Positions 4,727 through 63,692 of a stretch of DNA of 64,000 bases are shown here, in pieces. Location of the stretch: sequence record LR756501.1; one strand, 5' to 3'. Each line of letters starts with the position of its first letter. Position 1 is the first letter of the stretch. The translations under genes and the position numbers were made by a program. The notes under the pieces were generated by a model, which saw only the letters and a list, made by a program, of their open reading frames with translations, did no database searches and was not told the DNA's origin.

Positions 4727-5073
4727 GCCCACTAGCACATTTTCCGGGAGGACCAAGATATTGGGGTGATGCCCAGATATACTTAAATCCAATAGTTTTA
4801 TGTTTCGATAATAAAGAATGCGATAAATTATTGAAAATTGAAATACCAAATCCAATAGATAAAAAAACTTCATCAATTAAAGCGTCTTTTAAAGAAGATG
4901 ACGAAATGAGAAATACTCTTTTAAAAGAAAATCCAAAGGATTTAAGAATAGAATTCTATGATAGAGAAGGTAAAACTATAAGAATCATTTACATGCGAGA
5001 ATGTAAATGTGTTGAAATGCCTAATAACGAGGTTGAAATTCAATTAGAATCTTGGGAAGATAAATATTTTTAA
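4723..5073 (+). CDS. Divergent tail-tube (gp19)-like protein
   Basis: IEFYDREGKTIRIIYMREC resembles the YxRxG...hxhxGxxP strand pair of T4 gp19-like tubes. Confidence 0.4.
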   Translation: MSPLAHFPGGPRYWGDAQIYLNPIVLCFDNKECDKLLKIEIPNPIDKKTSSIKASFKEDDEMRNTLLKENPKDLRIEFYDREGKTIRIIYMRECKCVEMPNNEVEIQLESWEDKYF

Positions 5074-5351
5074 TCTAAAGTTAAATCTCTAACGTCATCT
5101 TCGACTTGATCGTAAAAATCTGGATATTCGTCTTCTATAATAGATAGAATTTCGTCTGCTTTATCCATTCTATAATCTAAGTCGTCACTTCCAAGTAATT
5201 TATCTAATTTCTTGTCTATACTCTTGTTTTTCAGAAGTTTAAAGAATCTGATTATATTACCGTCGTATTCTATTTCACCTGACCATTTTTCTTCACCGTA
5301 AGGGTCTAGTTCGCTTTTATCTGCGTTTTCGTTAAATTTCTTTATTTTCAT
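5070..5351 (-). CDS. Hypothetical protein with CTS-like N-terminus and DPYGEExW motif
   Basis: MKIKKFNEN...ELDPYGEEKW. Confidence 0.75.
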   Translation of the reverse strand: MKIKKFNENADKSELDPYGEEKWSGEIEYDGNIIRFFKLLKNKSIDKKLDKLLGSDDLDYRMDKADEILSIIEDEYPDFYDQVEDDVRDLTLD

Positions 5352-5791
5352 ATATATGCTTCGTGTTTGTTGCCTTCTATATCGTAGGCAATTAATTTCA
5401 TACTACTTAAATAACATTTATCTTGAAAATCATTTTGAGGATCGTTTGGAGCGTTGTCTACAAGATCTTGTAAATCATCTTCTATTTCAACATCGGGTCT
5501 TCCACCCCTGTTACTAATAACATTTCTATATTCTCCATTAATTCTTCTAGAACGAATTCTACCACCGTAACTACCACAATCTAAAACTTTCTTGAGTCTT
5601 TTATATTTTTCAATTATTTCTTTGATTTCATCGGCGTGTTCGTCTATTTCAGAATATCTTATTCCCAATGAAATTTCTTCTGGGTGACGAGTATCAGCGT
5701 CTCCGCCTTCGTATAACAACCACAACCAAACTTGGTCTGTTTTACATCTTTCAACTTCTTTAAATTTGAAGCCTTCAAAATTTTTGATCAT
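5348..5791 (-). CDS. Hypothetical protein, CTS-like N-terminus
   Basis: MIKNFEGF; TAATATATA on minus strand at 5808-5816. Confidence 0.7.
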   Translation of the reverse strand: MIKNFEGFKFKEVERCKTDQVWLWLLYEGGDADTRHPEEISLGIRYSEIDEHADEIKEIIEKYKRLKKVLDCGSYGGRIRSRRINGEYRNVISNRGGRPDVEIEDDLQDLVDNAPNDPQNDFQDKCYLSSMKLIAYDIEGNKHEAYI

Positions 5792-5820
5792 AATTTGATT
5801 TTTATTTTATATATTAAAAT

Positions 5821-6411
5821 TTATTTATAACTTCCTCCACCTACCCATAGTACTAAACTTCTTCTACACCCTTTAGTTATTGGAGTAACTCTATGTAACA
5901 AGAAACTTGGAAAAAATATTCCACAACCTTTTATTTTTGGTAAAGTCTTAAAATCACCACCTGTCCATATATCAAAATTACCTCCTTCGTATTCAGATGA
6001 ATCAGATAATTGAATAGTAACACTTATCTTTCTATGATTTATAGGATAGGGTCCAATATCCATATGCCAATCGTAATGTCCACCACCCTCATAATATTCA
6101 GTATATTGAATAGAATCTACAATAGAATGTAAATTATAACCGTAACTCTTATTAGCCTCAATGAACAGATCTTTTAATCTTTCATATACCCAATAAGATT
6201 TATCGTCGTAATGAATCCATTTAATCTTAGATTTCCTAATAGGTTCAACCTCTTCAACTGGCGATCCAACAGTTGTGGCTGTTTGAAATGGGTATAATTC
6301 TTTTAAATTATTAATCCACATCAACTGCTCTTCGTTAAATACTTCATTGATAGCCACAAAACTTGTTTGGTCTATAGCGTTATCAAATTCAAATACAGGT
6401 CTAAAATCCAT
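5821..6411 (-). CDS. 2OG-Fe(II) dioxygenase (prolyl-4-hydroxylase-like)
   Basis: YDWHMD (HxD), EYEGG, LLHRVTPITKGCRRSLVLW (distal His and 2OG-binding Arg). Confidence 0.92.
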   Translation of the reverse strand: MDFRPVFEFDNAIDQTSFVAINEVFNEEQLMWINNLKELYPFQTATTVGSPVEEVEPIRKSKIKWIHYDDKSYWVYERLKDLFIEANKSYGYNLHSIVDSIQYTEYYEGGGHYDWHMDIGPYPINHRKISVTIQLSDSSEYEGGNFDIWTGGDFKTLPKIKGCGIFFPSFLLHRVTPITKGCRRSLVLWVGGGSYK

Positions 6412-9400
6412 TATTTAATCTTACTTTTTAATTCTTGTAACTCACTTAACCAAATAGATTCCTCACTGGTCTGTTCCAACTTCTTTAACTTCTCTCTCAA
6501 TTTATCGTATTCTTCCTTCAACTCCTGCAACCTATCTTTTGTGAAAGACATAATAGACATATTCAAAAGATAACCATATGATTCTTCTACTCTTTCAAGT
6601 TTATGTTTTTCTAAATCCTGCTCAACCAGATCTCTACTTCGCTTGTTAATTATGACTTCACCGTCTATAACCAACTTTAAAAATTTCATTCTATTTTGAT
6701 GTATTCTTATATCCTTTTTTAACTCCTCTAGTTGATAATTTTTTCTCTTCGTGTAATATTCTAATCTCACTTTATAGAAATCATCTATTATATTATATTG
6801 ATCAGTATATTTTTTAATTTTACATTCTTCATCAAAAAGATGCATGTTCTTTGTAGATAAATAAGTCTCCAAACTCAACTTCTTATAAACATTACCGTCA
6901 CCAAGTAATTCTTCCATTTGTTCTTTAGTAAGTATAATCTTTATATCTATAACCTGATCAGTACAATTCTTTACATAATCCTTTATTATCTTATCTTCAA
7001 TTAACTTATCTAACTTCTTAAAATACTCATCGTTCCACATTCCAATAGGAAGCTCAGTCACTCTAATCACATTAGCATTTGGCTTATCATATATACCTCT
7101 TGTTATATATCTTCCACCTTCTTCGTCTCTTATTATCTCACCCTTAAATCCTTTATAATATGGTAAAACTTCTTTTGTTTTCTTACCCTGTATTTTATTA
7201 GCTAAATATGAAATTATCTCTAAAGGATTATACATAGGTACATTACTAGAATATCCAGTTCCTAAACCAAAAGCACCATTCACTAAAACCATTGGTATAA
7301 TAGGAACGTAATATTTTGGCTCAATTGGAGCACCGTCGTCATCTAAATAATCAAGTACATCATTATCTTCTTTCCTAAAAATATAACCACTTATATCACT
7401 TAACTTTGTGAAAATATATCTTGGTGAAGCACTATCTTGTCCACCCTTTATTCTTGATCCAAATTGTCCCTTTGGTGATAATAAATTTATATTGTTTGTA
7501 CCTACAAAAGTCTGTGCCATTCCAACAATGGCTTCTTCGAGTGAAGTGTTGCCGTGATGATAAGCAGCAGACTCAATTACCGCACCAGAAAGTGAACTAA
7601 CTTTTATTTCATTCCTAATGTTCTTCTTAACAAGAGTATAGAAGGCCTTTCTCTGACTTGGTTTAAATCCATCTATTGAGTTCTGTATTTGTCTTACATT
7701 ACTATACATTGAATACTCAATATACTCATTATTAATGAACTTATCATAAGTCTGTTTCACACTAAACTTATCAATAAAATCCACAGGAGCATAAGTCTTT
7801 AACCATTCTTTTCTATCGTCTGCTCTCTTATCATTAAACAACATATCAAGAAGATCCTTAGTCTCAGGCTTATCGTAATGAAACCTAATAAGATGCTTAC
7901 TTATCTTCTTGAAAAACTCTTTCATTTCATCTGGTTGTATAGTGCCCAAACCTTTGTAATACTTTATAAACCAGTCTTTTGTATTAGTTTCAGATTTCCA
8001 TTTCTTGTAATCACCCAGTCTGTAAAAGTACTTATATACTTTACCTTTTTCAATTCTAACAATAGGTGTAATGAATTCGTAAATGAAATCAAGGTGAAGA
8101 AGTTCAGGCCAGAACGTATCAAAAATATTCATAAGTAATCCTTTGATATGTTTACCATCAGCGTCTTCGTCAGACATAAGAACAACTTTACCGTATCTAA
8201 GTTTCTTAGTATCAGTATATTTTTTACCAAATTCAAGACCTAGGATATTAATGATATTTTTAAGTTCGTCATTTTTACCTATGTCTGCCATTGAGGCTCT
8301 TCTAACATTTAGTCCAGATCCTTTTAATGGAAATATACCAAAATAATCAGAATCAACTTCTGAAAGACCAGCAACACAGGATGAAGCTGCAGAGTCACCT
8401 TCTGTTAAGAATAATAAACATTTTTCACTTTCGTTAGTGCCAGCTTTAGCTGCGTCGTCGAGTTTACCTATTTTAACTTTTGATTTGGCTATATCTTTCT
8501 TAGCGTCAAAATCTTCTTTAATCATCAGAAAACGAATTAGTTCGTCAATCATTGCTGATCCAGCGATCTTTTTAATTAGATTATCAGATACTTCTGGAGC
8601 AGTTACTTTACTTATTAAGTTCTCTTTAGATTGTGTGTCGAATAATGGATTAACAACTTTACAATTAACAAATATAAATAAGTGATTTTTAATATCATTT
8701 TGTTTTATATTAAGTTTCTTATTCTTCTTTAATAGGGTTTCAGCAACTTTTTTTGTAATTTGATTACTCACAGAGTTAACGTGGGTACCACCGTTATAAG
8801 TAGATATACCATTAACCATAGATACTTGGTTGAATGAATTATCAAGGGATCTTGATACACCAATTTCCCATTTATCGTCAAGTTTTTCGTAGAATGATTC
8901 TTGTTCACCAACGAACATTTCCATATAGGATTTGAAATTCTTTGTGGGTATATGTATGTTATTGTAATACACTTTAACTTTACTACAATACACGGAAACG
9001 TCTATACAACGTTTTACGATGATTGATTCGATCTCTTCATCTATACCATCTAATTCAAAACGTGCAAAATCAGGATAAAAGGTTATTTTAGTATATTGTT
9101 TCTTTGACGCCTTTATTTTAGGTTTGCCAATTTTATTCATATTGTTTTCGAACTCTTGATGATAATGTTTCTTACCGTCACAAGTTTCTAATATGAATTT
9201 TTTAGAAAAGATATTTGTTAATTTGGCACCAAGTCCGTTTTTTCCACCCCACACTCTATCTATTGTATCGTCAAAATTTTCTCCTGCAAGAAGATGTCCA
9301 AAGATAAGTTCGGGTATATAACATTTTTCTTTTGAGTGCATCTCAACAGGAATACCTGTGCCGTCGTTCTCAATTGATATTGAATCCTTTGTAACATTAA

Positions 9401-9659
9401 CTTTAATATATTTAACGTCACCACTACGTATAGAGTGGTCGGACGCGTTAGTAAGAATTTCGTCAAAAAGTTTTAGAAAGCCTGGATTGAAGTTGATAGG
9501 TTTATTAACTATTTTAATATTGTTTAAGTCCTTTGGATCTTCAACAACGAAGATATTTCTAGTTTCTGTAATGGTTGATCCGACGTATGTATCTGGCCTT
9601 AGAAGGACGTGTTCTTTATGAGTTAATTTTTGATATTTTTCCGAATTAGTTTTAACCAT
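6411..9659 (-). CDS. top2: Type IIA DNA topoisomerase, single polypeptide, eukaryote/NCLDV-like
   Basis: EHVLLRPDTYVGS, EILTNASD, GGKNGLGAKL, TEGDSA, PLKG, DEDADG, KYYKGLGT, DGFKPSQRK, YHHG, ASPRY active-site Tyr; 1082 aa. Confidence 0.97.
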   Translation of the reverse strand: MVKTNSEKYQKLTHKEHVLLRPDTYVGSTITETRNIFVVEDPKDLNNIKIVNKPINFNPGFLKLFDEILTNASDHSIRSGDVKYIKVNVTKDSISIENDGTGIPVEMHSKEKCYIPELIFGHLLAGENFDDTIDRVWGGKNGLGAKLTNIFSKKFILETCDGKKHYHQEFENNMNKIGKPKIKASKKQYTKITFYPDFARFELDGIDEEIESIIVKRCIDVSVYCSKVKVYYNNIHIPTKNFKSYMEMFVGEQESFYEKLDDKWEIGVSRSLDNSFNQVSMVNGISTYNGGTHVNSVSNQITKKVAETLLKKNKKLNIKQNDIKNHLFIFVNCKVVNPLFDTQSKENLISKVTAPEVSDNLIKKIAGSAMIDELIRFLMIKEDFDAKKDIAKSKVKIGKLDDAAKAGTNESEKCLLFLTEGDSAASSCVAGLSEVDSDYFGIFPLKGSGLNVRRASMADIGKNDELKNIINILGLEFGKKYTDTKKLRYGKVVLMSDEDADGKHIKGLLMNIFDTFWPELLHLDFIYEFITPIVRIEKGKVYKYFYRLGDYKKWKSETNTKDWFIKYYKGLGTIQPDEMKEFFKKISKHLIRFHYDKPETKDLLDMLFNDKRADDRKEWLKTYAPVDFIDKFSVKQTYDKFINNEYIEYSMYSNVRQIQNSIDGFKPSQRKAFYTLVKKNIRNEIKVSSLSGAVIESAAYHHGNTSLEEAIVGMAQTFVGTNNINLLSPKGQFGSRIKGGQDSASPRYIFTKLSDISGYIFRKEDNDVLDYLDDDGAPIEPKYYVPIIPMVLVNGAFGLGTGYSSNVPMYNPLEIISYLANKIQGKKTKEVLPYYKGFKGEIIRDEEGGRYITRGIYDKPNANVIRVTELPIGMWNDEYFKKLDKLIEDKIIKDYVKNCTDQVIDIKIILTKEQMEELLGDGNVYKKLSLETYLSTKNMHLFDEECKIKKYTDQYNIIDDFYKVRLEYYTKRKNYQLEELKKDIRIHQNRMKFLKLVIDGEVIINKRSRDLVEQDLEKHKLERVEESYGYLLNMSIMSFTKDRLQELKEEYDKLREKLKKLEQTSEESIWLSELQELKSKIK

Positions 9660-9737: not shown

Positions 9738-10253
9738 ATGATAAAAGATTATAAATTATTTAGAGTGTTCGAAGAACTGACCGAACCTTGGGACGAAGAA
9801 CCACCTCTTCAATATAATCAATATTTCACTAATAACTGGGTTGGTTTTAAACAGGAGTTATTAGATGATTTGAAACTCAAGTTGATAGGTAAAACAATTT
9901 GTATAGACGCAACAAGACAATATGATTGGAGAGTAAAACAAGAACCTGATCCTATTGATAATATAGTTATTAACGGTACACATGTAAAACCTATTTATAA
10001 AATAACAGTTAAGGATATTCAGTACGATGGTAGTCACAGGCAGGAAGTTTATTACGTTGATATTATAGATGACGAAGGTAAAAGATATAAATTAAAGAAG
10101 ATAGTTACAGATAAAACATATGCTAATTTTGCCAAGAAGGCTGGTAAAGAACTAGAAAGAATGGCGGAAGAAAAGAGAAAGAAGGAAAGATTGAAGTTGA
10201 AGCATTTATATCACGATCCTTACGCCGAAGAACTTTGGGATGAGGACGATTAA
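9738..10253 (+). CDS. Hypothetical protein with CTS-like N-terminus and C-terminal DPYAEELW
   Basis: MIKDYKLFRVFEE...HDPYAEELWDEDD; TAATATATAG at 9724-9733. Confidence 0.75.
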   Translation: MIKDYKLFRVFEELTEPWDEEPPLQYNQYFTNNWVGFKQELLDDLKLKLIGKTICIDATRQYDWRVKQEPDPIDNIVINGTHVKPIYKITVKDIQYDGSHRQEVYYVDIIDDEGKRYKLKKIVTDKTYANFAKKAGKELERMAEEKRKKERLKLKHLYHDPYAEELWDEDD

Positions 10254-10719: not shown

Positions 10720-11559
10720 GTGAAGAATTATAAACAATTCGTAAACGAATATTACACATGGGATGATGATGTTACTGAAAAAACAATAGATCTTGGTGTT
10801 CTCTATGAACAACAAGAGGGAAACTCTGATCACATATTGCAAATTTTACAATATGAATTTAGACCAATACAATCAAATGATGAATATAAAGTTATCAATT
10901 TAGTCGGTAAGTATAGTAAAGTTAATTTAACATTGGATAATCGTGCGCAATATCCCGGAGGTATAGAAATGGATGAAAAAGGACTCCTATTCTCATCAAG
11001 ATTAAGAGACAGATTAACATTCAGACGTTTAACATTTGATCTTTTTCCCAGATTTCTTTTTAAAATTAAAATATTAAAAAGAAGATTTATCCCTGAAGAT
11101 CCATATGGAGAAGAAGAATGGGATATAAATGAATCCTATTATCCAGATTTATCACCATATAATTATAGTTGGGAGATGCCTGAGTGTGTTAATATTGGTT
11201 GGCTAGATGATAAACACGATTTTGAAAAAGGCGAAGTTCCTGAAGGTTTTGTAGATAAGTTGGTAAAAATGCCAAGGTTTGTACAACATTGTGGTTATCA
11301 CAATTGTCCATTCTGTGAAGGCGGAAGAGATACATGGAGCAGTAGTATTAAATTGGCTATAGGAGACGGTGTAGTTTACCTTTTCCCAGAATTGACGAAG
11401 CACTATATATCTAAACATCATTATAAACCACCACAAGAATTTATTGACGCTGTATTAAAAATGGAAAATATGTCTGATGGTGATGCCCATAGATACATGA
11501 ATAATATCATGTTAAGACATAAGGAACATTTTGATAAAATGTTCCATAGAAAGAGATAG
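10720..11559 (+). CDS. Two-module protein: unknown N-domain, DPYGEEEW linker, paralog of 10269..10706
   Basis: VNIGWLD...GEVPEGF...HCGYHNCPFC...HYISKHHYKPPQEFIDAV shared with the upstream gene. Confidence 0.75.
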   Translation: MKNYKQFVNEYYTWDDDVTEKTIDLGVLYEQQEGNSDHILQILQYEFRPIQSNDEYKVINLVGKYSKVNLTLDNRAQYPGGIEMDEKGLLFSSRLRDRLTFRRLTFDLFPRFLFKIKILKRRFIPEDPYGEEEWDINESYYPDLSPYNYSWEMPECVNIGWLDDKHDFEKGEVPEGFVDKLVKMPRFVQHCGYHNCPFCEGGRDTWSSSIKLAIGDGVVYLFPELTKHYISKHHYKPPQEFIDAVLKMENMSDGDAHRYMNNIMLRHKEHFDKMFHRKR

Positions 11560-12392: not shown

Positions 12393-13559
12393 ATGATAGA
12401 AACATTAACGCAACCCAAAGGAATGGTCTTGGAGGACGATTTCTTTGAAAAATTAAAGAATGAAAACAAAGTTTTCAAGTACAAGAACAAAGACAAACAC
12501 GCTTCCCTAACCGATGATTACTTATTCTTCCTTAAAAAATTAGAAGAGTCAACGACTACTTTTAAACAAATTGAAGAAGGAGAAGTAGTTGAAGGTAACA
12601 TTGTTAGTATCGATAAGAAAGAAATTATTATTGATATTAATTTCAAAGATACTGTATTCGTAGAAACGAAAACTATTGACCAAAACATGTTTGATAACTT
12701 ACATGTTGGCGACCCTATTAACGTTATGATCACTGAAATTAGTGATACTCCGTACTTCATCAAAGGATCTCTTAACGATCTTCTAAAACTCAATATTTCA
12801 AATATTGTTAAGGAACATTTTAATGAGAACAGATGTTTGTACGCTACTGTGAAAGAATCACAACCAGCAGGTTATTATCTCAACTTAGAGGTTGAAGGAC
12901 AAATAATTGACGCATTTATGCCAAACACACTAGCTGGTGTTAATAAACTTCACGACCCAAGTGCCATTGTTGGACAAAGATTCGAAGTTATGATTGAAAC
13001 TTTGGAACAAGACAAAGGTATTTATGTTGTTAGTCGTAAAAAATTCCTTGAAGATCAAATTCCTGAGAAGATCAAGATTTTGAAAAAGGAATGGATTAAA
13101 GACAAAAATAAAGTCTATTACGGACATATCACTGGCACAACTCCATTTGGAGCATTTGTTGAATTCCAAGGCGAGCCTTTAACATGTATGATACATCGTT
13201 ATAACATTCAAGAAGACTGGCAAACAGATGAAAAATGGGCACAGTTGAAACCAGGAATGATGGTAAACTTTTATGTGAAGGATATTATCACACGTAAGAA
13301 CAAGATTATTTCAACTCAAATTCTACGTGATTCTTTATGGGACACTATTAAAGTTGACGATACTGTAAAAGGTAAAGTTATAGCTATCAAGCCATTCGGT
13401 GCACTCATTCAATTGGATGAAGAAACAAATGGACTTATACAAAATACCTATCTTCAAAAGAATAAGATTGAATTGAAACTTGGACAGGAAATTGAAGTGA
13501 AGGTAACAAGTATTATGAAAGATGAAAGAAAAATTAATTTATCTCTAGTGAGTAAATAA
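12393..13559 (+). CDS. rpsA: Ribosomal protein S1-like protein (multiple S1 domains)
   Basis: EGEVVEGNIVSI, DAFMPNT...VVSRKK, ITGTTPFGAFVEF, VIAIKPFGALIQL...ERKINLSL; 388 aa. Confidence 0.85.
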   Translation: MIETLTQPKGMVLEDDFFEKLKNENKVFKYKNKDKHASLTDDYLFFLKKLEESTTTFKQIEEGEVVEGNIVSIDKKEIIIDINFKDTVFVETKTIDQNMFDNLHVGDPINVMITEISDTPYFIKGSLNDLLKLNISNIVKEHFNENRCLYATVKESQPAGYYLNLEVEGQIIDAFMPNTLAGVNKLHDPSAIVGQRFEVMIETLEQDKGIYVVSRKKFLEDQIPEKIKILKKEWIKDKNKVYYGHITGTTPFGAFVEFQGEPLTCMIHRYNIQEDWQTDEKWAQLKPGMMVNFYVKDIITRKNKIISTQILRDSLWDTIKVDDTVKGKVIAIKPFGALIQLDEETNGLIQNTYLQKNKIELKLGQEIEVKVTSIMKDERKINLSLVSK

Positions 13560-15787: not shown

Positions 15788-16360
15788 ATGTTAACGAAAT
15801 TTGAATTATTTTTGGAAGGTAAATGGTTTGGAGGCGGTAGAGCAGCAAAGGCTGGCCCTAATGCTCCAGTTGTTGTTCCTAATCAAGAGCAAGCAAAGAA
15901 AAAAGTTTACGATAAACCAGATGATGATATAATAGAATGGATGATTAACTATCTTAAAAAGACTGGTGTTGATGAGACAAAATTAACTGATGATTATAAT
16001 TTATCTCCAAAAACTTTTGAACCTAAACAATGGTGGGAATATAAATTTATAAAACAAGGAAAGACTAATCCATTGGATCCTTACGGTGAAGAAGATTGGC
16101 CAGGAGCTACTGGTAATAAACAGATTAATATAAGAATAGAAAAGAGATCTCTACTTGGTGACAAATATGAATATTATTATAGGTTCAAAGTTAATGATAA
16201 TGATTTAGATGTATCTGAAAAATATATTAAAAGAATAGTAGAATTACTTGACGCCCCAAAAGAAGCAAGAAGGTTGGCGAGAGAAAAAAGGGAGGCTGAA
16301 GCTAAGAAATCCAAGAATGACGCAATAAGAAGAGATTTATTTGAAAAAAGATCGAAATAA
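15788..16360 (+). CDS. Hypothetical protein with CTS-like N-terminus and DPYGEEDW
   Basis: MLTKFELFLEG...LDPYGEEDW; TAATATATAG at 15774-15783. Confidence 0.75.
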   Translation: MLTKFELFLEGKWFGGGRAAKAGPNAPVVVPNQEQAKKKVYDKPDDDIIEWMINYLKKTGVDETKLTDDYNLSPKTFEPKQWWEYKFIKQGKTNPLDPYGEEDWPGATGNKQINIRIEKRSLLGDKYEYYYRFKVNDNDLDVSEKYIKRIVELLDAPKEARRLAREKREAEAKKSKNDAIRRDLFEKRSK

Positions 16361-19173: not shown

Positions 19174-19246
19174 CCCTCGTTAGCTCATTTGGAAGAGTGT
19201 CAGATTCTAGCTCTGACGGTAGTAGGTTCGAATCCTACACGGGGGT
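19174..19246 (+). tRNA. Amber suppressor tRNA (anticodon CUA), copy 1
   Basis: Acceptor CCCTCGT/ACGGGGG, D arm GCTC/GAGT, anticodon arm TCAGA-TTCTAGC-TCTGA (CTA at 19207-09), T arm GTAGG-TTCGAAT-CCTAC. Confidence 0.9.
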
Positions 19247-19251
19247 CAAAA

Positions 19252-19326
19252 CGGATAGTAGCTTAGCCAGGCCAAAAGCATCGGTCTCTAAAACCGATAT
19301 CGAGGGTTCAAATCCCTCCTATCTGA
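19252..19326 (+). tRNA. Amber suppressor tRNA (anticodon CUA), copy 2
   Basis: Acceptor CGGATAG/CTATCTG, D arm GCTT/AAGC, anticodon arm TCGGT-CTCTAAA-ACCGA (CTA at 19288-90), T arm GAGGG-TTCAAAT-CCCTC. Confidence 0.92.
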
Positions 19327-19418
19327 CTAAAAATAATCACCCTGATTATCAACGTCTTCTTACGTTTGCCCCCATTTTAGAAAAAACTAGTAAAAAAGTT
19401 TAATATATACTCAGGTAT

Positions 19419-24374: not shown

Positions 24375-24782
24375 TTATAGTTTATTTTTTAGTTTATTTA
24401 TAATTCTTTCCTGTTCGTCAATTAATCTTTCACGTGCTTTTCTTTCTTCATACATATCAGTTAAAATTTCGTTCACCTTAGCCATAATCTCTGATTTTGT
24501 ATTATAACCATCTGGTGATATATTATATGGTCTGATGGTTTCGGGATAAAGTCCTATAAAATCAAGATATGGATGAATTGTATCTAACTCTTCGTCCCAG
24601 TTTTCCTCACCGTAAGGATCTTCTTTAGATGCATGTCTTTTAAGAGATCTTAAAGCAATTTGTCTAATTTCTTCAGCGTTAGTAATAAAACCAAGTTCTG
24701 GGTCGAACGGACTAACACTATCAACTCCTCTTTTAATTTTGAGGATTTCCATTCTTCTTTCTAATGTTTCTCTTCTGTCCAT
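24375..24782 (-). CDS. Hypothetical protein with internal DPYGEENW
   Basis: SKEDPYGEENWDEE. Confidence 0.75.
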   Translation of the reverse strand: MDRRETLERRMEILKIKRGVDSVSPFDPELGFITNAEEIRQIALRSLKRHASKEDPYGEENWDEELDTIHPYLDFIGLYPETIRPYNISPDGYNTKSEIMAKVNEILTDMYEERKARERLIDEQERIINKLKNKL

Positions 24783-25790: not shown

Positions 25791-26185
25791 TTAGCGTCAT
25801 TATAATCTGTAAGCTTTTCGATATTTTTATCACTATCCCAATGTTCTTTACCGTCTCTCCAAAGGACCTTTCCGTTCTCATCTACAACAGGGAAAAAATT
25901 GACGTAATTTTGAATTATTCTATAAATCATCCAAGAAGGAATAAACAAACAAAGAAGGGTTATTCTAACCCACATGTGTTCAACGGGATTGAACATGTGA
26001 AAAGCGTAGACAAAAGGAGATACATCCCATTTTATCAACGCGATAATAGAAGTAATAAAACCAGAGATAAAAATAAATACCTCCATAATAGTTAACCAAT
26101 ATTCAAACGTGCATCTTAACGCACCGCGAAAAGAGTTGAAATATTCTCTCTCCTCTACTTTAGTCATGTCTTTAAATTTCTTCAT
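25787..26185 (-). CDS. Hypothetical membrane protein
   Basis: Two hydrophobic segments; ATGA overlaps. Confidence 0.7.
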   Translation of the reverse strand: MKKFKDMTKVEEREYFNSFRGALRCTFEYWLTIMEVFIFISGFITSIIALIKWDVSPFVYAFHMFNPVEHMWVRITLLCLFIPSWMIYRIIQNYVNFFPVVDENGKVLWRDGKEHWDSDKNIEKLTDYNDAK

Positions 26186-26406
26186 TTTTCCCAGTTTTCT
26201 TCCCCGTAAGGGTCTTCTTTTGAAATAACTCTTTTAATTTCTTTCTTTTTTGGTTCTTCTTCTCTTCTACGGTGTTCTCTTTCTCTTTCAAAATCTGCTC
26301 TCTCGAAATCACCACGTCTAAGTTTTTCGAAATAAATATCCACAATCATCCACGTCATATAAAAGACAACAGGAAGAAATAATAATAACCATATCATATC
26401 GTTCAT
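26182..26406 (-). CDS. Small membrane protein with C-terminal DPYGEENW
   Basis: TM helix, charged linker, KRVISKEDPYGEENWEK. Confidence 0.75.
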   Translation of the reverse strand: MNDMIWLLLFLPVVFYMTWMIVDIYFEKLRRGDFERADFEREREHRRREEEPKKKEIKRVISKEDPYGEENWEK

Positions 26407-26754
26407 TTATTTATCCCAATCTTCTTCTCCGTAAGGATCTTCCTTAGTGAATACCCTTTTTATTGATTTAGGAACACTCCACCCGTAAGGATTATCAACA
26501 ACAACATCATTAAAATTTAAAATAACCCTATTATGAGCGTTTCTTTCCCTTTCTCTTTCCATTTTTCTTTCTTTATTATATTCACTAATAGCAGTCCCAA
26601 ATGTAACTACAAGGAATAAAACTATTAAAGACGAAATGAAAATAATACCAGTTAAAGCATAATTATTACCGATAAAGTGAGAAGCAACGAAGAATGGTAT
26701 TAAACCAAACAGTATCACTAATAACTTACCTAGTGTAGTTAGCTTGTTCCACAT
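26407..26754 (-). CDS. Membrane protein with C-terminal DPYGEEDW
   Basis: Two TM helices, KRVFTKEDPYGEEDWDK. Confidence 0.75.
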   Translation of the reverse strand: MWNKLTTLGKLLVILFGLIPFFVASHFIGNNYALTGIIFISSLIVLFLVVTFGTAISEYNKERKMERERERNAHNRVILNFNDVVVDNPYGWSVPKSIKRVFTKEDPYGEEDWDK

Positions 26755-26808: not shown

Positions 26809-27849
26809 TTATTGATGAAATATGCTGTCTTTTGTGTCCCACTTTGTATAAAGATGGCAGTCACTCCTTAATATGAGATACCTTATATCCCCAGGATTTG
26901 TTTCAGCCATACAATCTTTATCTAACACAACAGTCAAATTTCCCATTTGATATTTTGGATAATGCCCACCCAAGTCTTTACCTCTATCTAAACAATACAT
27001 TTCAATATCATCTATAAACCTATCAGCAACCTTATTACCCTTTATCCACCTACTTATTTCACTATCATCGTGCCCAGCCCAAAGAACTCTGAAAGTAGCC
27101 TGATCTACACCTAACTCCTGTAATCTATTAATAACTTCTTCTGGTGACTTTTTATCGTAAACATTCACAAGATTTAAACTCAATCTCAATATAAACCCTT
27201 TCTGTTTAATCCTTTGGCATAAATCCTTCATATTAAACTGAACCCTTGGATGCATTCTTATAATACCAGCATTTGATTTATCATCAAATATATCTGATAC
27301 TGAAAGAGATATAAGATAAACACCAACTACATGTCTAAGAAAATGTAAATTATCATCGTTGAGCATTACACCACTTGTTTGTATTTCAAGTTTAAATGGT
27401 TTTTCAAGTCTGTTATTCATTTCACCTATCATTTTAAGGAAAGGTTTATTTTGAATAGGTTCGCCTGTACCTGTGAGGATAGCGTAATCACAACCCATTT
27501 TTCTTACTTGTTCGAACTTTTTGAAATACATTTCAGTAAAAAGTTCTTCATTAGATTTATCTTTATAAGTATCTTTTAACTGTGATATTTTAGATACACA
27601 AAATTTACAAGAATTAATACAACCGTGTGTTGGAACAAGAATAGACATACTCCTAACATCCACATTATATCGCGGCATTTCTCTTCTGTGATGCCTTGTT
27701 TTAGATTTAACTACAACTCCTAAATCTTTATCATCCTCAATATCAACGCTTTCAAAGACACCGTTAGTTTTCAACATATCTAAATAGTTATTAAGACAGT
27801 ATGGGCAGATTGTATTTTTATTAATATATTGGTTGAATTTGTCTATCAT
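26809..27849 (-). CDS. Radical SAM enzyme with N-terminal extension
   Basis: GCINSCKFC (CxxxCxxC), LTGTGEP, IQTSG. Confidence 0.9.
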   Translation of the reverse strand: MIDKFNQYINKNTICPYCLNNYLDMLKTNGVFESVDIEDDKDLGVVVKSKTRHHRREMPRYNVDVRSMSILVPTHGCINSCKFCVSKISQLKDTYKDKSNEELFTEMYFKKFEQVRKMGCDYAILTGTGEPIQNKPFLKMIGEMNNRLEKPFKLEIQTSGVMLNDDNLHFLRHVVGVYLISLSVSDIFDDKSNAGIIRMHPRVQFNMKDLCQRIKQKGFILRLSLNLVNVYDKKSPEEVINRLQELGVDQATFRVLWAGHDDSEISRWIKGNKVADRFIDDIEMYCLDRGKDLGGHYPKYQMGNLTVVLDKDCMAETNPGDIRYLILRSDCHLYTKWDTKDSIFHQ

Positions 27850-28442: not shown

Positions 28443-29615
28443 TTATTCTTTTACAAAAATAATTCTATCTGGAAATCTTTTATAGTACTCTTTTTCATCA
28501 GCTACAAAACATAAATTATATTCCTGATTAAACATAGCCTCTCCACCAACCATTGCAGTTTCTTCTTCCCTCCAATTAGTTATATGTGCTATATCACTCA
28601 AAGGAACACGATTCATATCTATCTGTCTTATATTCCAAATGTGTGTTTTTTCGTTATCTGCTACATATTTAATGAAATAATAAGTATCTGTTCCTATAAT
28701 TCTCTCGTAAATATCTAACCCCATATCTTTTAAATTTTCTAACACCCTTTCTTTAGTAATCCCGTATCTATTTAATTTAATATCAATGAATTTGAATTTA
28801 GTATCTTGTCTACCAGGCACTTGCCACCAATATAATCTCGATGTTTTGAACATATTTTTATCTGGGTGTGGTGAAGGTAGTTCTGATCTTTGGATTAAAT
28901 CGTAGAAGAAATTGAATCCGTTTGGTCCTGATGCTATTATAAATTTAGCACTTTCTTTCATATATTTAATTATATCTAAATAGATAGGTACGATAATATG
29001 TTGTGGAATATGTGAAAATTCATCAATATAAATTACGTCACCTTCTTTATAGATAGGATTTGGTTCAATCGATCTGGACATTGCTTGAATTCTTGAACCA
29101 CTTTCAAATACTATTTGTTTCTCGTTCCAGCAAGTTACACCTTGTTTCAAATAGAAAGGTAATAATTTATAAATATCTTTGAACTTTCTCATTATTTCTT
29201 TTGCTGTTTCACCCTTGTTAGCCATTAAAATAATGCTCTTGTTATCGTTAAATAAAAGAAAATGTAAAAATAACATACATAGGGCAGCAGTTATACCCAT
29301 TTGTCTGCTTTTGAAAATAATAGAATACTTATTATCAAACTGTTTTAGTATCTCTTTTTGGTAATCTCTTAATTCAACTCTACCAATACTACCGTCAAGT
29401 TGTTTTATCTTACAAAAATTATCAACAAAATATTCAACACTATTAGCACACCTAACGTACTCTCTTAACTCGTGTCCGTCTAATAAAAACTTAATACCAG
29501 CCTTTCTTGTACCTGGTATATTCTGAAACCAGATAGTCTCAGATCTGGATAGTTTCTCAGCATTTTTATACTTTTCCTCTATCTCTAAAATATCTTTTGT
29601 CGTGTAAACTTTCAT
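28443..29615 (-). CDS. Terminase large subunit (T4 gp17-like), ATPase domain only
   Basis: LRDYQ adenine motif, KSRQMGIT, MANKGETAKEIM, YIDEF Walker B, SGPNG, FNQEYNLCF; ends where the nuclease domain normally begins. Confidence 0.85.
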   Translation of the reverse strand: MKVYTTKDILEIEEKYKNAEKLSRSETIWFQNIPGTRKAGIKFLLDGHELREYVRCANSVEYFVDNFCKIKQLDGSIGRVELRDYQKEILKQFDNKYSIIFKSRQMGITAALCMLFLHFLLFNDNKSIILMANKGETAKEIMRKFKDIYKLLPFYLKQGVTCWNEKQIVFESGSRIQAMSRSIEPNPIYKEGDVIYIDEFSHIPQHIIVPIYLDIIKYMKESAKFIIASGPNGFNFFYDLIQRSELPSPHPDKNMFKTSRLYWWQVPGRQDTKFKFIDIKLNRYGITKERVLENLKDMGLDIYERIIGTDTYYFIKYVADNEKTHIWNIRQIDMNRVPLSDIAHITNWREEETAMVGGEAMFNQEYNLCFVADEKEYYKRFPDRIIFVKE

Positions 29616-44934: not shown

Positions 44935-45165
44935 ATGAGTGCTTACGACGAATACCTCAGAGAAGAAATGAATAAAACAAGGGCATATTCAGAATATGTT
45001 GCTAGTTATGTTAATCAATTAGTAGATAAAAAAGAGACTAAAATTAAACAATTGAAAACTCCCAATCAGTCAATTTGGGACAGACTTAAAATTGAAGCCA
45101 AAATATCAATTATCATTGGTATCGCTGGCCTTGTATTATCATTCTTAACACTTATTACAAAATGA
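44935..45165 (+). CDS. Short paralog of 44247..44933 with C-terminal TM anchor
   Basis: SIWDRLKIEAKISIIIGIAGLVLSF tail; YSEYV resembles YSDYV. Confidence 0.7.
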   Translation: MSAYDEYLREEMNKTRAYSEYVASYVNQLVDKKETKIKQLKTPNQSIWDRLKIEAKISIIIGIAGLVLSFLTLITK

Positions 45166-45362
45166 ACTTAAATGAATTAGATCCTTACGGGGAAGAAAAT
45201 TGGTCTGATGAATTACGTCAAGAACCAGATTATAAAGGAATATGTCTTCACCTTGAAGAGTGGGAAAAGAAAGGAATTCCTCATAGTTTATCAGATATGA
45301 TATATTTAGCCAATAAATATAATATTCCCGTTCCAGTTAAAAAAGTAATTAGATATATATGA
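45162..45362 (+). CDS. Small protein with N-terminal DPYGEENW
   Basis: MNLNELDPYGEENW. Confidence 0.7.
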   Translation: MNLNELDPYGEENWSDELRQEPDYKGICLHLEEWEKKGIPHSLSDMIYLANKYNIPVPVKKVIRYI

Positions 45363-58372: not shown

Positions 58373-58389
58373 CTCTCTTATTTTATTTT

Positions 58390-60498: not shown

Positions 60499-61121
60499 TA
60501 AAGAGCTTTAAATTATTCGAACGTGGAGACGGTATTGAAGACGAAGATGATATTCCAACACATCGTCAAATGGTACTGGATTTAGACGGTAACTACACGC
60601 TGAAAAAACAACCAGAAATAGCTATGGATTATATACTTGGTGTACCTAGTGGTGAAGTTGTTTTAATAGATAATATTAATGATTTTAAAGCTGTGGTAGA
60701 TAGAAAGTTAGCTCATTATACTTATTCATTTAGAGGTACAATATTAAATTGTTATTGTGCACCAGATAATAATCTTAAAGTCATAAAATCTTTTGTTAAT
60801 GATTTACAGATAAGTAAGACTGGTGAAGAAAAATACGATATGATCTGTAAAGATTACAGACAAGAAATGAGTAGAATAACTAAAAAGAAACACGTAGTAG
60901 CATATATTCCAAAATTAAATGGTGTAGATTATTATTATATTATACTTCCAGATCTAACAATGAACAAAGCTTTTTATAAAGCTAAAATAAATGATATGGT
61001 TGGAGTAACTAAAATTATGAAAATGAAACATCCTGATTCAGTTTTTTCTTTCACAGAAAGATTAACCAAACCAGGAATTGAAGTTAAATATTACGGATTA
61101 CCCAAAGCTTACGTAGATTAA
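60492..61121 (+). CDS. Protein with CTS-like N-terminus and GxPSGE domain
   Basis: MVIKSFKLFE...ILGVPSGEVV. Confidence 0.75.
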   Translation: MVIKSFKLFERGDGIEDEDDIPTHRQMVLDLDGNYTLKKQPEIAMDYILGVPSGEVVLIDNINDFKAVVDRKLAHYTYSFRGTILNCYCAPDNNLKVIKSFVNDLQISKTGEEKYDMICKDYRQEMSRITKKKHVVAYIPKLNGVDYYYIILPDLTMNKAFYKAKINDMVGVTKIMKMKHPDSVFSFTERLTKPGIEVKYYGLPKAYVD

Positions 61122-61897
61122 GGATTACTAAATGGTTCTTGATTCACTGAACCGACCGATCCATTAATTCCACCAGTTCCAAACCCCTGTCCTTGTAGTA
61201 ATGTAGGATCTTTCTTAAAATCTTCGATTATTTTATTCCATTTTCTTTGGTCAAAAATAACTAAATCGTCTGTTACTTTTTGTTCTTCGATTTGTAATTG
61301 TTGTTCTTCTACTTTTTGTTGTTCGTTAATCTCTTTATGTTCGTATTCGTCTCTTAATTCTTTATAAAAAGATTTCATTTTAGTAGATAAATCATTTATC
61401 ATTTTCGAACTATCTCTAATCTCTTTCTGGTAAGCATTTACAGCCACGTGCATTTCGGGGTCGTTTGCACCAGCATCTATTTGTTTCATACAATTTACAA
61501 GTCCTCTTTTAGCACAAGATAACGAGAATTTAATATCACTAATGGTTTCAGCGTCATTTTTAATGATACTCATTACGTTCTTCTTTCTCATTAACGTATC
61601 ATTGAGGTATAAACTGGATAGACACTCTAGGGTTTCTGCGGCGTCTTCTTTTATCATTTCTATATCTTTTTCGTAGTCGTATTTTGAGTATTCAAAATCA
61701 AGACCAGGTAGTAAGTCCTTTGGTGGGATTAGGTCTTGTGGTAATGTATCTATCTCATCTAACATAGAATTTATTTCGTCTTGTAGATTTGATATATTTC
61801 CTAATTTTTTATTTATGTATTCTTTTTCTTCTGATTTATCTGTCCAAACCTTTTCTGTTTTTTCTGTTTTCTTTGGACGACCTCTTTTTCCTGGCAT
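61118..61897 (-). CDS. Hypothetical helical protein with N-terminal AT-hook-like motif
   Basis: MPGKRGRPKK; coiled-coil core. Confidence 0.7.
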   Translation of the reverse strand: MPGKRGRPKKTEKTEKVWTDKSEEKEYINKKLGNISNLQDEINSMLDEIDTLPQDLIPPKDLLPGLDFEYSKYDYEKDIEMIKEDAAETLECLSSLYLNDTLMRKKNVMSIIKNDAETISDIKFSLSCAKRGLVNCMKQIDAGANDPEMHVAVNAYQKEIRDSSKMINDLSTKMKSFYKELRDEYEHKEINEQQKVEEQQLQIEEQKVTDDLVIFDQRKWNKIIEDFKKDPTLLQGQGFGTGGINGSVGSVNQEPFSNP

Positions 61898-61982
61898 AAC
61901 GTATTCTTATTTTTTGAATAAGTATATATAGAAATATAAATTGTAATTTTAATATATAGCATTATATAAAAAAAACCAACCA

Positions 61983-63692
61983 ATGTTTAATATTTTAACC
62001 TTTAAGCAGTTATTCGAAAACGAAGCAAAACCTTTTTACTGGAGACCTGTTCCTTTACCACAAGTATATCCAAGTAGAAATCAAGTAGATGTATGGATAA
62101 ATAATAACGAAGATTTGAAAGATAATATGATTAGATTCATGGCTAAAGATTGGGACTTCAAAACAAATGATTACGAAATAGATCCAATTGAAAAAGTCAT
62201 AGTTGATATGTACGAAGGTGAAGGTTACATATATTTCGTTGACGAAAATTACAAGACATATAAAATAGAAGGCGAAGAAATAGAAGTTAAAGTAAACGGT
62301 GAGAGAAAATTCAATAAAGAAGACCCTTACGGAGAAGAGGTCTGGGAGAATAAAAGATTGAATGAAATCTTTGATTCTAATGTTACTTACGAATATAAAT
62401 TCGTAAAATCTAGAAAAATGGTACAATTTACTGATCTTGTTTATACATTCACATCAAAAGATAATGTCGAATATTTTGTTACTGTATCTTATAATAAAGA
62501 TTTTCACTCAATGAGTGTTAAATTTACAGATAAGGCTAATTTCAAAGGATTAATGAATAAAGTAAAAGATAAATATGTCGATCTTGAAAACTTTGACGCC
62601 ATTAATGTTCTGAATACAGTTGTTAAGATATGTAAAGATTTTTACGATAAGAACATGGATAAAGTTAAAATGTTTACCACTTCTACTTTAGATGAAAAAA
62701 GATTAAGAGTATATAAATACATATTAAGAAAATATTTTAAAGGGTGGGAAGTTGATTCATATGTTGATCCAAGAGGTGATATAGTAATTGAAGCGGAGCC
62801 ACCAAAGGAACAAGTGAATGAAGGTTGGAAATTTCAATTAGGTGAATTAGCTTTATTCTTAACTTATTTATTTAGTAGTATTGGTAGTGATGTTAGTCAT
62901 AAACGTTTTACCCGTGAGTATTTTGATCATTACGCTAAAACAATGAACATTGCTAATAACAATCAAATTGTTCAAATGGTTGTGAAAGATTTTAAAGCCA
63001 AGATTGCTACAGATCCTAAAATAATGAATAAACAAGAAGTTTATAATGTGATAGACAATACTCCTATTGTATTTAGAAAGAATGACGAAGTATGTTATAT
63101 TTTATATAATCAAGCAAGACTTAATAATCCAGGTATAACTCCGAGCTGTTGGTGTACAACAATGTTAAAAGACGGTGAGAAAACTAAAAAGGGCGGTAAG
63201 TCTGTTATATTTTTAGCTCAAAACGCTTCTTATAGTGATATTTTACACGAGTTATCACACGCCATTGAAACAGTAGTTGAAGTAGATCCTAAGATTTTAG
63301 ATATGTTCAATTTCAATTATACTTTTAAACAACAGGGACTTTTATATATGATGCTTACTAATTTTGAATACGAATTGAAAACTCCTGTTAACGCATCTAC
63401 GATAACATATTTAAAAAATCCAAGTGAAGTTTATTCAAGGTTGAACAATCTTAAAATGTTTTTATTTAAGAATGGTAAACTAAGATCTGTCGGTCAGGAA
63501 ATATCAGAAGATCTCTTGTATAGTTTAATAACTGGACAAGTTTATAAGTCTTTAAATGAAAAGGCAAAGGAAGAATATAGAAAATCTGATTTTATGGAAA
63601 TATTAATGTTTATAAGTGTAAAGAAAAGTAGAAAGATAAATCAATACGTTCAAAACGTATCACAATCAAGATTAAAAAATAATATGGCGTAA
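61983..63692 (+). CDS. Putative multi-module polyprotein (CTS-like start, DPYGEEVW, xNE junctions, HExxH)
   Basis: MFNILTFKQLFEN...EDPYGEEVWENKRLNE|IFD...EQVNE|GWK...ILHELSHAIE...EVYSRL. Confidence 0.75.
   Translation: MFNILTFKQLFENEAKPFYWRPVPLPQVYPSRNQVDVWINNNEDLKDNMIRFMAKDWDFKTNDYEIDPIEKVIVDMYEGEGYIYFVDENYKTYKIEGEEIEVKVNGERKFNKEDPYGEEVWENKRLNEIFDSNVTYEYKFVKSRKMVQFTDLVYTFTSKDNVEYFVTVSYNKDFHSMSVKFTDKANFKGLMNKVKDKYVDLENFDAINVLNTVVKICKDFYDKNMDKVKMFTTSTLDEKRLRVYKYILRKYFKGWEVDSYVDPRGDIVIEAEPPKEQVNEGWKFQLGELALFLTYLFSSIGSDVSHKRFTREYFDHYAKTMNIANNNQIVQMVVKDFKAKIATDPKIMNKQEVYNVIDNTPIVFRKNDEVCYILYNQARLNNPGITPSCWCTTMLKDGEKTKKGGKSVIFLAQNASYSDILHELSHAIETVVEVDPKILDMFNFNYTFKQQGLLYMMLTNFEYELKTPVNASTITYLKNPSEVYSRLNNLKMFLFKNGKLRSVGQEISEDLLYSLITGQVYKSLNEKAKEEYRKSDFMEILMFISVKKSRKINQYVQNVSQSRLKNNMA

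Follow-up and report, generated by a model that had tools for sequence, protein, structure and literature searches.

An eight-residue peptide, DPYGEExW, is attached unchanged to the ends and domain junctions of about 90 otherwise unrelated proteins of the 735,411-bp uncultured phage LR756501.1, and also occurs on proteins of related uncultured phages. It looks like a portable recognition tag, and our searches identified no partner. The peptide belongs to no named family: no Pfam or PHROGs model covers it, the PDB contains no match, and no paper was found that mentions it. The stretch of DNA analyzed first (the window) comprises the last 64 kb of this genome, and a first-pass annotation of it had pointed out the motif in nine unrelated soluble and membrane proteins, at N-termini, C-termini and domain junctions. 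This observation is correct and larger than first described. All nine sites lie in frame in ORFs of 66 to 569 aa (Table 1); eight read DPYGEExW and one reads DPYAEELW, and two sites are N-terminal, three C-terminal and four internal. Two of the carriers have N-terminal transmembrane segments. The degenerate DNA pattern for DPYGEExW matched eight times in the window, and zero times in each of 100 dinucleotide-preserving shuffles.

Table 1 Copies of the tag in the 64-kb window of LR756501.1.
Position	Strand	Tag	ORF	Location in ORF	Remarks
5283-5306	-	DPYGEEKW	5070-5351(-), 93 aa	residues 16-23, N-terminal type	follows the leader MKIKKFNENADKSEL
10215-10238	+	DPYAEELW	9738-10253(+), 171 aa	residues 160-167, C-terminal type, 4 residues before the stop	only Gly-to-Ala variant in the genome; preceded by a Lys/Arg-rich helix-like stretch
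11098-11121	+	DPYGEEEW	10969-11559(+)	5 residues before the DUF7919 domain (residues 57-163)	ATG start; a GTG start at 10720 is also possible
16076-16099	+	DPYGEEDW	15788-16360(+), 190 aa	residues 97-104, internal	
24597-24620	-	DPYGEENW	24375-24782(-), 135 aa	residues 55-62, internal	upstream context SLKRHASKE
26191-26214	-	DPYGEENW	26182-26406(-), 74 aa	2 residues before the stop	membrane protein, one N-terminal TM segment, tag on the side predicted cytoplasmic; context IKRVISKE
26416-26439	-	DPYGEEDW	26407-26754(-), 115 aa	2 residues before the stop	membrane protein; context IKRVFTKE; stop codon abuts the ATG of the next tagged gene; AlphaFold2 predicts a small hairpin-like loop for the last 20 residues
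45180-45203	+	DPYGEENW	45162-45362(+), 66 aa	residues 7-14, N-terminal type	
62322-62345	+	DPYGEEVW	61983-63692(+), 569 aa	residues 114-121, between an N-terminal region and DUF6934 (residues 150-256)	homologues in other phage contigs exist both with and without the tag

Across the whole 735-kb genome we counted 104 copies in 90 ORFs, corresponding to about 9% of its genes, whereas 1.3e-4 exact matches are expected from amino-acid composition and only 10 one-mismatch variants exist. Of the 104 copies, 19 lie within 26 residues of the N-terminus, 42 are C-terminal and 43 are internal. The first-pass annotation had inferred from synonymous codon variation that selection acts on the peptide rather than on the DNA, and this was borne out at the genome scale, where all synonymous codons are used at every position. 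The apparent TAC/CCT preference matches the genome-wide codon-context bias: Tyr before a G-starting codon is TAC in 66% of cases, and Tyr-Gly dipeptides outside the motif use TAC in 69%.

Background-level occurrence of the motif, or carriers that were fragments of one homologous domain, had been set beforehand as grounds for rejecting it as a tag, and neither was found. With the motif and its flanks masked, all-against-all BLASTP gave 87 clusters for 90 carriers, and Pfam identified different domains in different carriers. These include GNAT, methyltransferase, dCMP-deaminase plus CCA-adding enzyme, nucleotidyltransferase, phosphoribosyltransferase, DUF7919, DUF6934, leucine-rich-repeat and membrane proteins, as well as a paralogue of the head maturation (prohead) protease (phrog_207, E 3e-19). 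All 15 tags in the nine carriers with Pfam hits lie outside the Pfam domains. The tag is gained and lost as a discrete indel, since one orthologue has a 19-residue insertion carrying the tag that two others lack, and 94 tagged ORFs have tag-less homologues. Moreover, it sits where genes fuse or split: the same modules occur fused in one phage and as adjacent genes in another, each ending right after the tag, and in bead-on-a-string proteins with up to 12 tags a copy follows nearly every module of about 100 residues.

The distribution of the tag is phage-specific. It is multi-copy on many AT-rich viral contigs, at least 35 in IMG/VR, and a profile search of 1.84 billion representative proteins found 476 hits at E<=1e-3, some with up to 12 tags. 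In 596 Gb of cellular genomes, by contrast, the pattern gave 72 single hits against about 70 expected by chance. One divergent syntenic relative has a different variant, DPF[AD]E[ED]DW, at all three of its sites, as expected if the tags track one partner.

We interpret DPYGEExW as the invariant core of a portable tag of about 17 residues, consisting of a short basic, strand-like stretch (typically K-R-[VI]-[FY]-[ST]-x-[LE]), D-P-Y-G-E-E-x-W, and two acidic or polar residues. A lineage of huge, AT-rich phages related to the 735-kb genome, which was placed in the Mahaphage clade with a predicted Bacteroidetes host, attaches it to the N-terminus, the C-terminus or the inter-domain junctions of many unrelated, cytoplasm-facing proteins and protein modules. 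The enrichment, the peptide-level purifying selection, the unrelated carriers, the placement outside Pfam domains, the gain and loss as an indel and the restriction to this group of viral contigs are demonstrated by the analysis, whereas it is by inference only that we regard the tag as a recognition handle read by one common phage-encoded factor and acting in the finished protein. The latter, as a docking tag would act, is suggested by the 42 stand-alone C-terminal tags, which are kept perfect although nothing lies downstream to be cut off, and in 28 of which the stop comes exactly two residues after the Trp. AlphaFold2 gave coil for an N-terminal tag, and for a C-terminal tag a small hairpin-like loop in which the RV upstream pairs with the EE of the motif (pLDDT about 81), although these models rest on shallow or pseudo-alignments and have modest confidence. 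The first-pass interpretation, a docking tag for one common partner such as a phage scaffold, capsid or portal protein, a protease or a host hub, is partly supported: it remains the best reading, but a host hub used by host proteins through the same motif is unlikely given the chance-level occurrence in cellular genomes. The tag has the features of a short linear docking motif in being short, outside folded domains, on unrelated proteins, and gained and lost between orthologues, whereas a defined partner domain would be an inference. Overall we consider the common-factor reading about as likely as not. Seven invariant positions out of eight is far stricter than typical docking motifs and resembles the recognition site of a specific enzyme, and a protein with 10 to 12 tags, one at every module boundary, carries more than docking would need.

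Our preferred version, which is only weakly supported, is that the tag gathers proteins at the head-assembly site or prohead core and would then work like the T4 capsid-targeting sequence or an encapsulin cargo-loading peptide; in fused multi-module proteins the same handle may also direct cleavage. Indirect hints in this direction are the tagged protease paralogue, a tagged protein carrying the 14-residue repeats of the protease-scaffold protein, and tagged fragments of capsid, portal and protease proteins. However, membrane proteins are not depleted among the carriers (7 of 90 against 88 of 958), a tail-sheath domain fragment is tagged, about 9% of all genes carry the tag, and the true portal, protease-scaffold and capsid proteins carry none.

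The main alternative, which the first-pass annotation did not consider and which we regard as possible but less likely, is that the tag is a processing site or module delimiter for a dedicated phage protease. The multi-tag proteins, the interchange of fused and split modules and the strictness of the motif, which is typical of specific viral proteases, are consistent with this view, and the only Gly substitution in the genome is Ala. A candidate enzyme is a retropepsin-like protein with the D-T-G motif encoded in the 735-kb genome (Asp_protease_2 E 1.2e-12, RVP above its cut-off), which lies next to a multi-tag protein in an arrangement conserved in two relatives, but this adjacency is inherited synteny and not independent evidence. 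The prohead protease is another candidate, as G-E-E resembles the S/A/G-x-E sites of phiKZ-type phages; however, variants in related contigs also show D, N or S at the Gly position, and the scaffold repeats contain I-A-E, suggesting a T4-like L/I-x-E specificity (PMC5694885) that the tag does not fit. Cleavage alone cannot explain the 42 C-terminal tags, and not all domain boundaries in a 1179-aa carrier have a tag.

The remaining explanations appear less likely still. The tag could be a self-contained element, either a small acidic-aromatic hairpin capping module ends or a partner for the basic N-terminal leader (M-I-K-K-F-K-x-F-E) of another module, so that tagged proteins join tail-to-head without a separate receptor. 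In line with this unlikely view, the predicted hairpin-like loop pairs the conserved basic residues with the two Glu, leader and tag co-occur (odds ratio 4.65, p = 4e-5), and operons of tag-ended ORFs and fused versions are interchangeable. Yet the model comes from a pseudo-alignment with no true covariation, the N-terminal tag is predicted as coil, most carriers lack the leader, and a purely structural cap would not need seven invariant residues across unrelated folds. A degron or modification site, marking proteins for timed degradation or for a post-translational modification by a phage or host enzyme, is improbable: the mostly terminal location (61 of 104 copies), the cytoplasmic orientation predicted in membrane carriers and a strictness compatible with an enzyme recognition site would fit, but host proteins do not use the motif, no modifying enzyme or adaptor is linked to it, and multi-tag bead-on-a-string proteins are hard to explain as degradation substrates. 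Finally, it is very unlikely that the motif is no functional peptide but a remnant of one homologous domain or an in-frame selfish or recombinogenic DNA repeat (such as Rickettsia palindromic elements). Copies do cluster in tandem gene arrays, and an SH3-like module follows the tag in 10.5% of non-C-terminal cases against 0.5% background, but there is no similarity outside the tag, the ratio of 103 exact copies to 10 one-mismatch variants excludes neutral decay, the DNA varies freely at synonymous sites without motif-specific codon bias, and all copies are in frame and in sense.

Among known systems, the T4 capsid targeting sequence of internal head proteins and Alt is likewise a short peptide shared by otherwise unrelated phage proteins, and is sufficient in T4 to send them into the prohead core (PMC5694885). 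It is, however, strictly N-terminal, 10-20 residues long, removed at L/I-x-E and carried by a handful of proteins, whereas the present tag occurs at either end or internally, is often repeated and has a different sequence; the separate leader in this genome, ending in I/L-x-E, looks more like such a sequence than the tag does. Encapsulin cargo-loading and microcompartment encapsulation peptides are portable terminal peptides of about 10-20 residues that address unrelated cargo enzymes to the inside of a protein shell, and encapsulin shells share the HK97 fold of phage capsids. An HK97-type capsid protein is present here, but the encapsulation peptides have a different consensus, are degenerate and are carried by few cargo proteins, and the tags described here, for which shell binding would be conjecture, also lie between domains and in arrays. 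The prohead-protease motifs of giant phages (phiKZ S/A/G-x-E; SPN3US A-x-E) agree by sequence with G-E-E, and with A-E-E in the one variant, and giant-phage heads hold 50 or more proteins, many of them processed, in phages that also have a diverged protease paralogue (PMC5694885); those motifs have only two constrained positions, include no invariant D-P-Y before or W after, and are not found at extreme C-termini. Cleavage sites of viral polyproteins (retropepsin or potyvirus NIa type) are highly specific sites of about 7-8 residues separating independently functional units; here too the tags lie between units that also exist as independent proteins, and a retropepsin-like gene is present in this phage lineage, but such processing is not known in tailed phages, most tagged units here are separate genes, and cleavage at the tag is hypothetical. 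Multi-copy eukaryotic docking motifs, for example the DP[FW] motifs that bind the AP-2 appendage, are short acidic-aromatic motifs repeated in several proteins and bound by one hub; this is an analogy only, as they have three fixed residues, lie in long disordered regions and are unrelated in origin.

A more far-reaching possibility, which we consider rather unlikely but which is not excluded, is that these huge phages run a proteome-wide peptide code in which one invariant tag marks about a tenth of their proteins, including deliberately kept fragments of their own capsid, portal, protease and sheath proteins. Such a code would have no precedent in phages, and it could take the form of assembly of the tagged proteins into a single supramolecular body or compartment, of tail-to-head joining of modules through acidic tag and basic leader, or of retrovirus-style maturation of polyproteins by a phage retropepsin. 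The small tagged ORFs carrying fragments of structural proteins, conserved between phages, form a separate puzzle and may bear on assembly control or on interplay with host sensors of phage structural proteins. Being short, portable and tolerated at either end of a protein, the tag could become a tool for loading or processing proteins, as the T4 capsid-targeting sequence has. If one tag addresses or processes about 90 proteins, it organizes a large, otherwise unannotated share of the largest known phage genomes, and finding its reader would assign a common fate to hundreds of "hypothetical" proteins at once, which could be head cargo, an assembly site, a compartment or proteolytic maturation.

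The window is the last 64 kb (record positions 671412-735411) of LR756501.1, a 735,411-bp 'uncultured phage' record without annotation, and bases 5000-27000 of the window match both LR756501.1 and LR756503.1 at 100% identity. A 735-kb genome, presumed to be this one, is described as the largest of the Mahaphage clade, with a predicted Bacteroidetes host (PMC7162821). The window has a G+C content of 31% and encodes, among other things, a fused type II topoisomerase, a DinG-like helicase, a terminase large-subunit N-terminal domain, an S1-domain protein and two radical-SAM proteins. It also contains two adjacent tRNA genes with an anticodon that reads the amber codon TAG, while TAG ends only 5 of 98 long ORFs in the window and 4 of 90 tag carriers, pointing to possible amber suppression or stage-specific recoding. 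In a related phage contig, a TonB-dependent-receptor-like gene was found, which fits a Bacteroidota host.

Coordinates of features in the window, in the 735-kb genome and in other analysed stretches (L handles designate individual stretches of DNA: L006 is equated with the 735-kb genome locus on its row, L114 is a contig, L207 a related phage contig and L210 a divergent relative)
Sequence	Coordinates	Strand	Feature
Window	19174-19247 and 19252-19327	+	Adjacent tRNA genes, anticodon CTA, labelled tRNA-Pyl by ARAGORN
Window	6414-9659	-	Single 1082-aa ORF fusing GyrB-like ATPase, Toprim and GyrA-like (DNA_topoisoIV) domains; one-chain type II topoisomerase
Window	28446-29615	-	390-aa ORF matching only the N-terminal ATPase domain of the T4-type large terminase; the nuclease half may be encoded separately
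Window	12393-13556 (+); 26812-27849 (-); 34984-36021 (-)		Protein with three S1 RNA-binding domains, like ribosomal protein S1, and two radical-SAM proteins, one with a lysine-2,3-aminomutase C-terminal domain
Window	26407-26754	-	Protein with a degenerate tag-like stretch (DNPYGWSVP) at residues about 88-96, 18 residues upstream of the true C-terminal tag
Window	9738-10253 (+); 15788-16360 (+); 5348-5791 (-)		Examples of genes with the N-terminal leader peptide
735-kb genome	5558-7420	+	621-aa protein matching a PHROG family of unknown function very strongly and, more weakly, an actin-like partition protein family; it may be a phage cytoskeletal element
735-kb genome	73913-76336	+	Head maturation protease fused to a long repeat-containing tail
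735-kb genome = L006	283618-284037 (-) = L006:34121-34537		Retropepsin-like aspartic protease gene
L207	14142-14555	-	Retropepsin-like aspartic protease gene
L210	7379-7807	+	Retropepsin-like aspartic protease gene
L210	7841-9049 and nearby	-	Variant tags, no canonical copy
L207	836-4060	+	1074-aa TonB-dependent-receptor-like gene (CarboxypepD_reg plus an outer-membrane beta-barrel)
L114	75-3256	+	Array of abutting small tag-ended ORFs
735-kb genome	552104-556034	-	Array of abutting small tag-ended ORFs

The first-pass annotation had described DPYGEExW as a short motif recurring in nine unrelated proteins of the window, and this observation was confirmed, with all nine sites present and in frame. 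The degenerate DNA pattern for DPYGEExW matched 8 times in the window and 0 times in each of 100 dinucleotide-preserving shuffles. A six-frame scan of the whole genome identified 104 copies, 103 of DPYGEExW and one of DPYAEELW, and a relaxed pattern allowing conservative substitutions added none. All 104 copies lie in ORFs of 55-1179 aa, 90 ORFs in total, which corresponds to about 9% of the 958 genes obtained with a crude gene call. From amino-acid composition 1.3e-4 exact copies and 0.02 one-mismatch copies are expected, whereas 103 and 10 were observed; 6 of these 10 keep DPYGEEx and differ only at the Trp.

Every synonymous codon is used at each position of the motif; Gly, for example, is encoded by GGT (68), GGA (14), GGG (14) and GGC (7), and Pro uses all four codons. 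An excess of TAC and CCT initially resembled a motif-specific, DNA-level signal, but this was rejected since the excess equals the genome-wide context bias: Tyr before a codon starting with G is TAC in 66% of cases, Tyr-Gly dipeptides outside the motif use TAC in 69% of cases, and Pro before Tyr is CCT in 55% of cases. The same bias holds in related contigs. Selection therefore acts on the peptide, as the first-pass annotation had proposed, and synonymous sites look equilibrated.

Beyond the eight core residues of the tag, which spans about 17 residues, preferences were observed for a hydrophobic residue or Glu just before the Asp, for Asp, Glu or Asn at the two positions after the Trp and, in the C-terminal class, for an upstream K-R-[VI]-[FY]-[ST]-x-[LE], while position x is mostly Asn, Asp or Glu. 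Of the 104 copies, 42 are C-terminal (at most 4 residues after the Trp, exactly 2 in 28 cases), 19 are N-terminal (within 26 residues of the start, an approximate class because gene starts were set crudely at the first ATG) and 43 are internal. Structural models gave only weak evidence, being of low to moderate confidence. AlphaFold2 predicted coil for the tag in a 75-aa protein in which it is followed by a small beta domain (13-sequence alignment; pLDDT about 57-59 over the tag). For the last 40 residues of the window protein 26407-26754(-), run with a pseudo-alignment of 57 C-terminal tails, the final 20 residues reached pLDDT about 81, with a predicted two-residue bridge between the R-V upstream and the E-E of the motif, giving a small hairpin-like loop.

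The carriers do not form one family. With the motif and its flanks masked, all-against-all BLASTP at E<=1e-3 left 87 clusters among the 90 carriers. Pfam and PHROGs identified, in different carriers, DUF7919, DUF6934, a GNAT acetyltransferase, a methyltransferase, a nucleotidyltransferase, a phosphoribosyltransferase-like stretch, a 1179-aa protein with a dCMP-deaminase domain, three small modules and a CCA-adding enzyme, a tail-sheath C-terminal domain, and a 178-aa paralogue of the head maturation protease with the tag at its C-terminus (Peptidase_S77, E 1.9e-5; phrog_207, E 3.4e-19). In related contigs, a family of leucine-rich-repeat proteins carries the tag after an N-terminal leader. In every carrier with a Pfam hit, the tag lies outside the domain. 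Membrane proteins are neither enriched nor depleted (7 of 90 carriers against 88 of 958 genes), and by the positive-inside rule their tags face the cytoplasm. Moreover, a second recurrent peptide was observed in the 735-kb genome, where 49 of 958 genes start with M-[IV]-K-K-[FY]-K-x-F-[EN], often ending in I/L-x-E, and 14 of these genes also carry the tag (odds ratio 4.65, p = 4e-5). This leader resembles the T4 capsid-targeting sequence, although it could equally be an AT-rich start-region preference.

The DNA pattern occurs in at least 120 stretches of IMG/VR, on contigs of 12-243 kb and often several times per stretch. In 935 kb of DNA retrieved from loci chosen because they contain the tag, 261 peptide copies were counted, with G+C from 20 to 42% and the same three contexts. 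In contrast, in 596 Gb of bacterial and archaeal genomes the pattern occurs 72 times, always once per contig, where about 70 hits are expected from its information content (15 fixed and 4 two-fold positions, both strands, uniform base composition). Host proteins thus do not share the motif beyond the chance rate, and mimicry of a host hub was rejected. A profile of 115 tag segments searched against 1.84 billion representative proteins identified 476 proteins at E<=1e-3, mostly with several tags because a single tag scores too low. The top hits are bead-on-a-string proteins of 1162 aa with 10 tags, 1537 aa with 12 and 912 aa with 7, in which a tag follows almost every module of roughly 100 residues and each protein also ends in a tag. 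A 325-aa protein with four tags was also found.

Comparison of tagged ORFs with all ORFs of the genome and the retrieved contigs revealed how the tag moves. In one orthologue of a protein of about 750 aa, a 19-residue insertion carries the tag and is absent from two other orthologues that align on both sides of it. A 275-aa protein with an internal tag in one contig corresponds, in the 735-kb genome, to a 131-aa gene that ends two residues after its tag, plus the next gene. Finally, 94 tagged ORFs have tag-less homologues. The tag is therefore a discrete, portable unit, and 'module-tag-stop-module' and 'module-tag-module' are interchangeable encodings.

The head module, at 72-78 kb of the 735-kb genome, comprises the portal protein (phrog_213), an 807-aa head maturation protease and the major head protein, and carries no tag. 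The long C-terminal part of the protease holds about 13 tandem repeats of a 14-residue unit (Y-I-A-E-x-[LV]-D-K-S-I-x-Y-[SA]-E), each containing an I-A-E that fits the T4-type protease site, so this is probably a self-digesting scaffold. Many small tagged ORFs, however, are fragments of these proteins and of the tail sheath, covering capsid residues about 24-45, 81-124, 139-299, 322-386, 459-515 and 517-565, portal residues 279-334, protease residues 39-156, the scaffold repeats, and sheath residues 273-362. In contig L114, nine abutting small ORFs each end in ...KR[IV]YS[DE][IL]DPYGEExWE[EKD] followed directly by the stop codon, and their bodies are such fragments, of the phage's own major capsid protein, prohead protease and tail sheath, in scrambled order; the 735-kb genome has a similar array. 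The intact structural genes carry no tag. A tail-sheath gene split and joined by tags was considered and rejected, since the order and content of the ORFs do not fit. The ORFs are intact and their tags are perfect in several phages, so these arrays, conserved between phages, appear to be maintained.

A candidate enzyme is encoded next to the 10-tag protein, whose contig contains a 137-aa retropepsin-like protein. The 735-kb genome has an orthologue with 50% identity and the L-V-D-T-G active-site motif, which matches Asp_protease_2 at E 1.2e-12 and RVP at 24.3 bits against a cut-off of 20.7, and lies beside a multi-tag protein. A search for loci related to the protease returned nothing in IMG/VR, while a stricter DNA pattern found one orthologue. 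The gene, of about 139 aa, lies beside a multi-tag protein in three related phages, but the whole region is syntenic between the first two, so that the adjacency is inherited rather than independent evidence and was rejected as a sign of functional linkage. The third, more divergent relative keeps the same arrangement, but its neighbouring protein has DPFAEEDW and DPFDEDDW instead of DPYGEExW, and the locus has three such variant sites and no canonical one, suggesting lineage-wide co-variation of the tag. The lineage-specific tag variants include DPYGEE, DPYGED and DPF[AD]E[ED]. A scan for DPF[AD]E[ED]xW returned almost only single, scattered hits, which serves as a control for the multi-copy behaviour of the true motif, but not as evidence for a second widespread variant.

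The enrichment of the motif, selection on the peptide, the unrelatedness of its carriers, its position outside Pfam domains, its portability and its chance-level occurrence in cellular genomes follow directly from the analysis, whereas action in the finished protein, binding to a partner, destination and cleavage are inferred. The first-pass annotation's interpretation, a docking tag for one common partner, is partly supported. Two internal candidates for a receptor were rejected: an SH3-like domain follows the tag 20 times more often than background but only in 10.5% of cases, and AlphaFold2 did not dock the tag onto it with any confidence, while the protease-scaffold repeats are acidic like the tag and therefore an unlikely receptor. 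The tagged protease paralogue, the tagged scaffold-repeat protein and the enzyme-rich carrier set recall the T4 capsid-targeting sequence and the many packaged proteins of giant phages (PMC5694885), but simple head loading is argued against by the lack of depletion of membrane proteins among carriers, by the tagged sheath fragment, and by the presence of the tag in 9% of all genes. The strictness of the motif, the multi-tag proteins and the retropepsin-like gene keep a processing model alive, although it is the less likely reading. Self-association of the acidic tag with the basic leader is doubtful, and a degron or modification site is weaker still. The readings of the tag as part of one homologous domain or as selfish DNA, the former having been set beforehand as a ground for refutation together with a lack of enrichment, are excluded by the tests presented here.

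No Pfam or PHROG model covers the tag, no PDB chain matches it (weak EF-hand-like hits are not significant), and DPYGEE appears in no phage paper of the literature library searched. It is closest to the targeting peptides of T4 and of encapsulins, from which it differs in position-independence, number of carriers, invariance and array formation. The main point is carried by the C-terminal tags, since 42 stand-alone genes keep a perfect tag with nothing downstream to be cut off, from which we infer that the tag acts in the finished protein. Together with its portability, its placement outside domains, its presence on unrelated cytoplasm-facing proteins and its occurrence in cellular genomes only at the chance rate, this supports, with moderate confidence, a recognition handle that would be read by one phage-encoded factor. 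The docking and processing models can also be combined, with docking first and then cleavage where something lies downstream.
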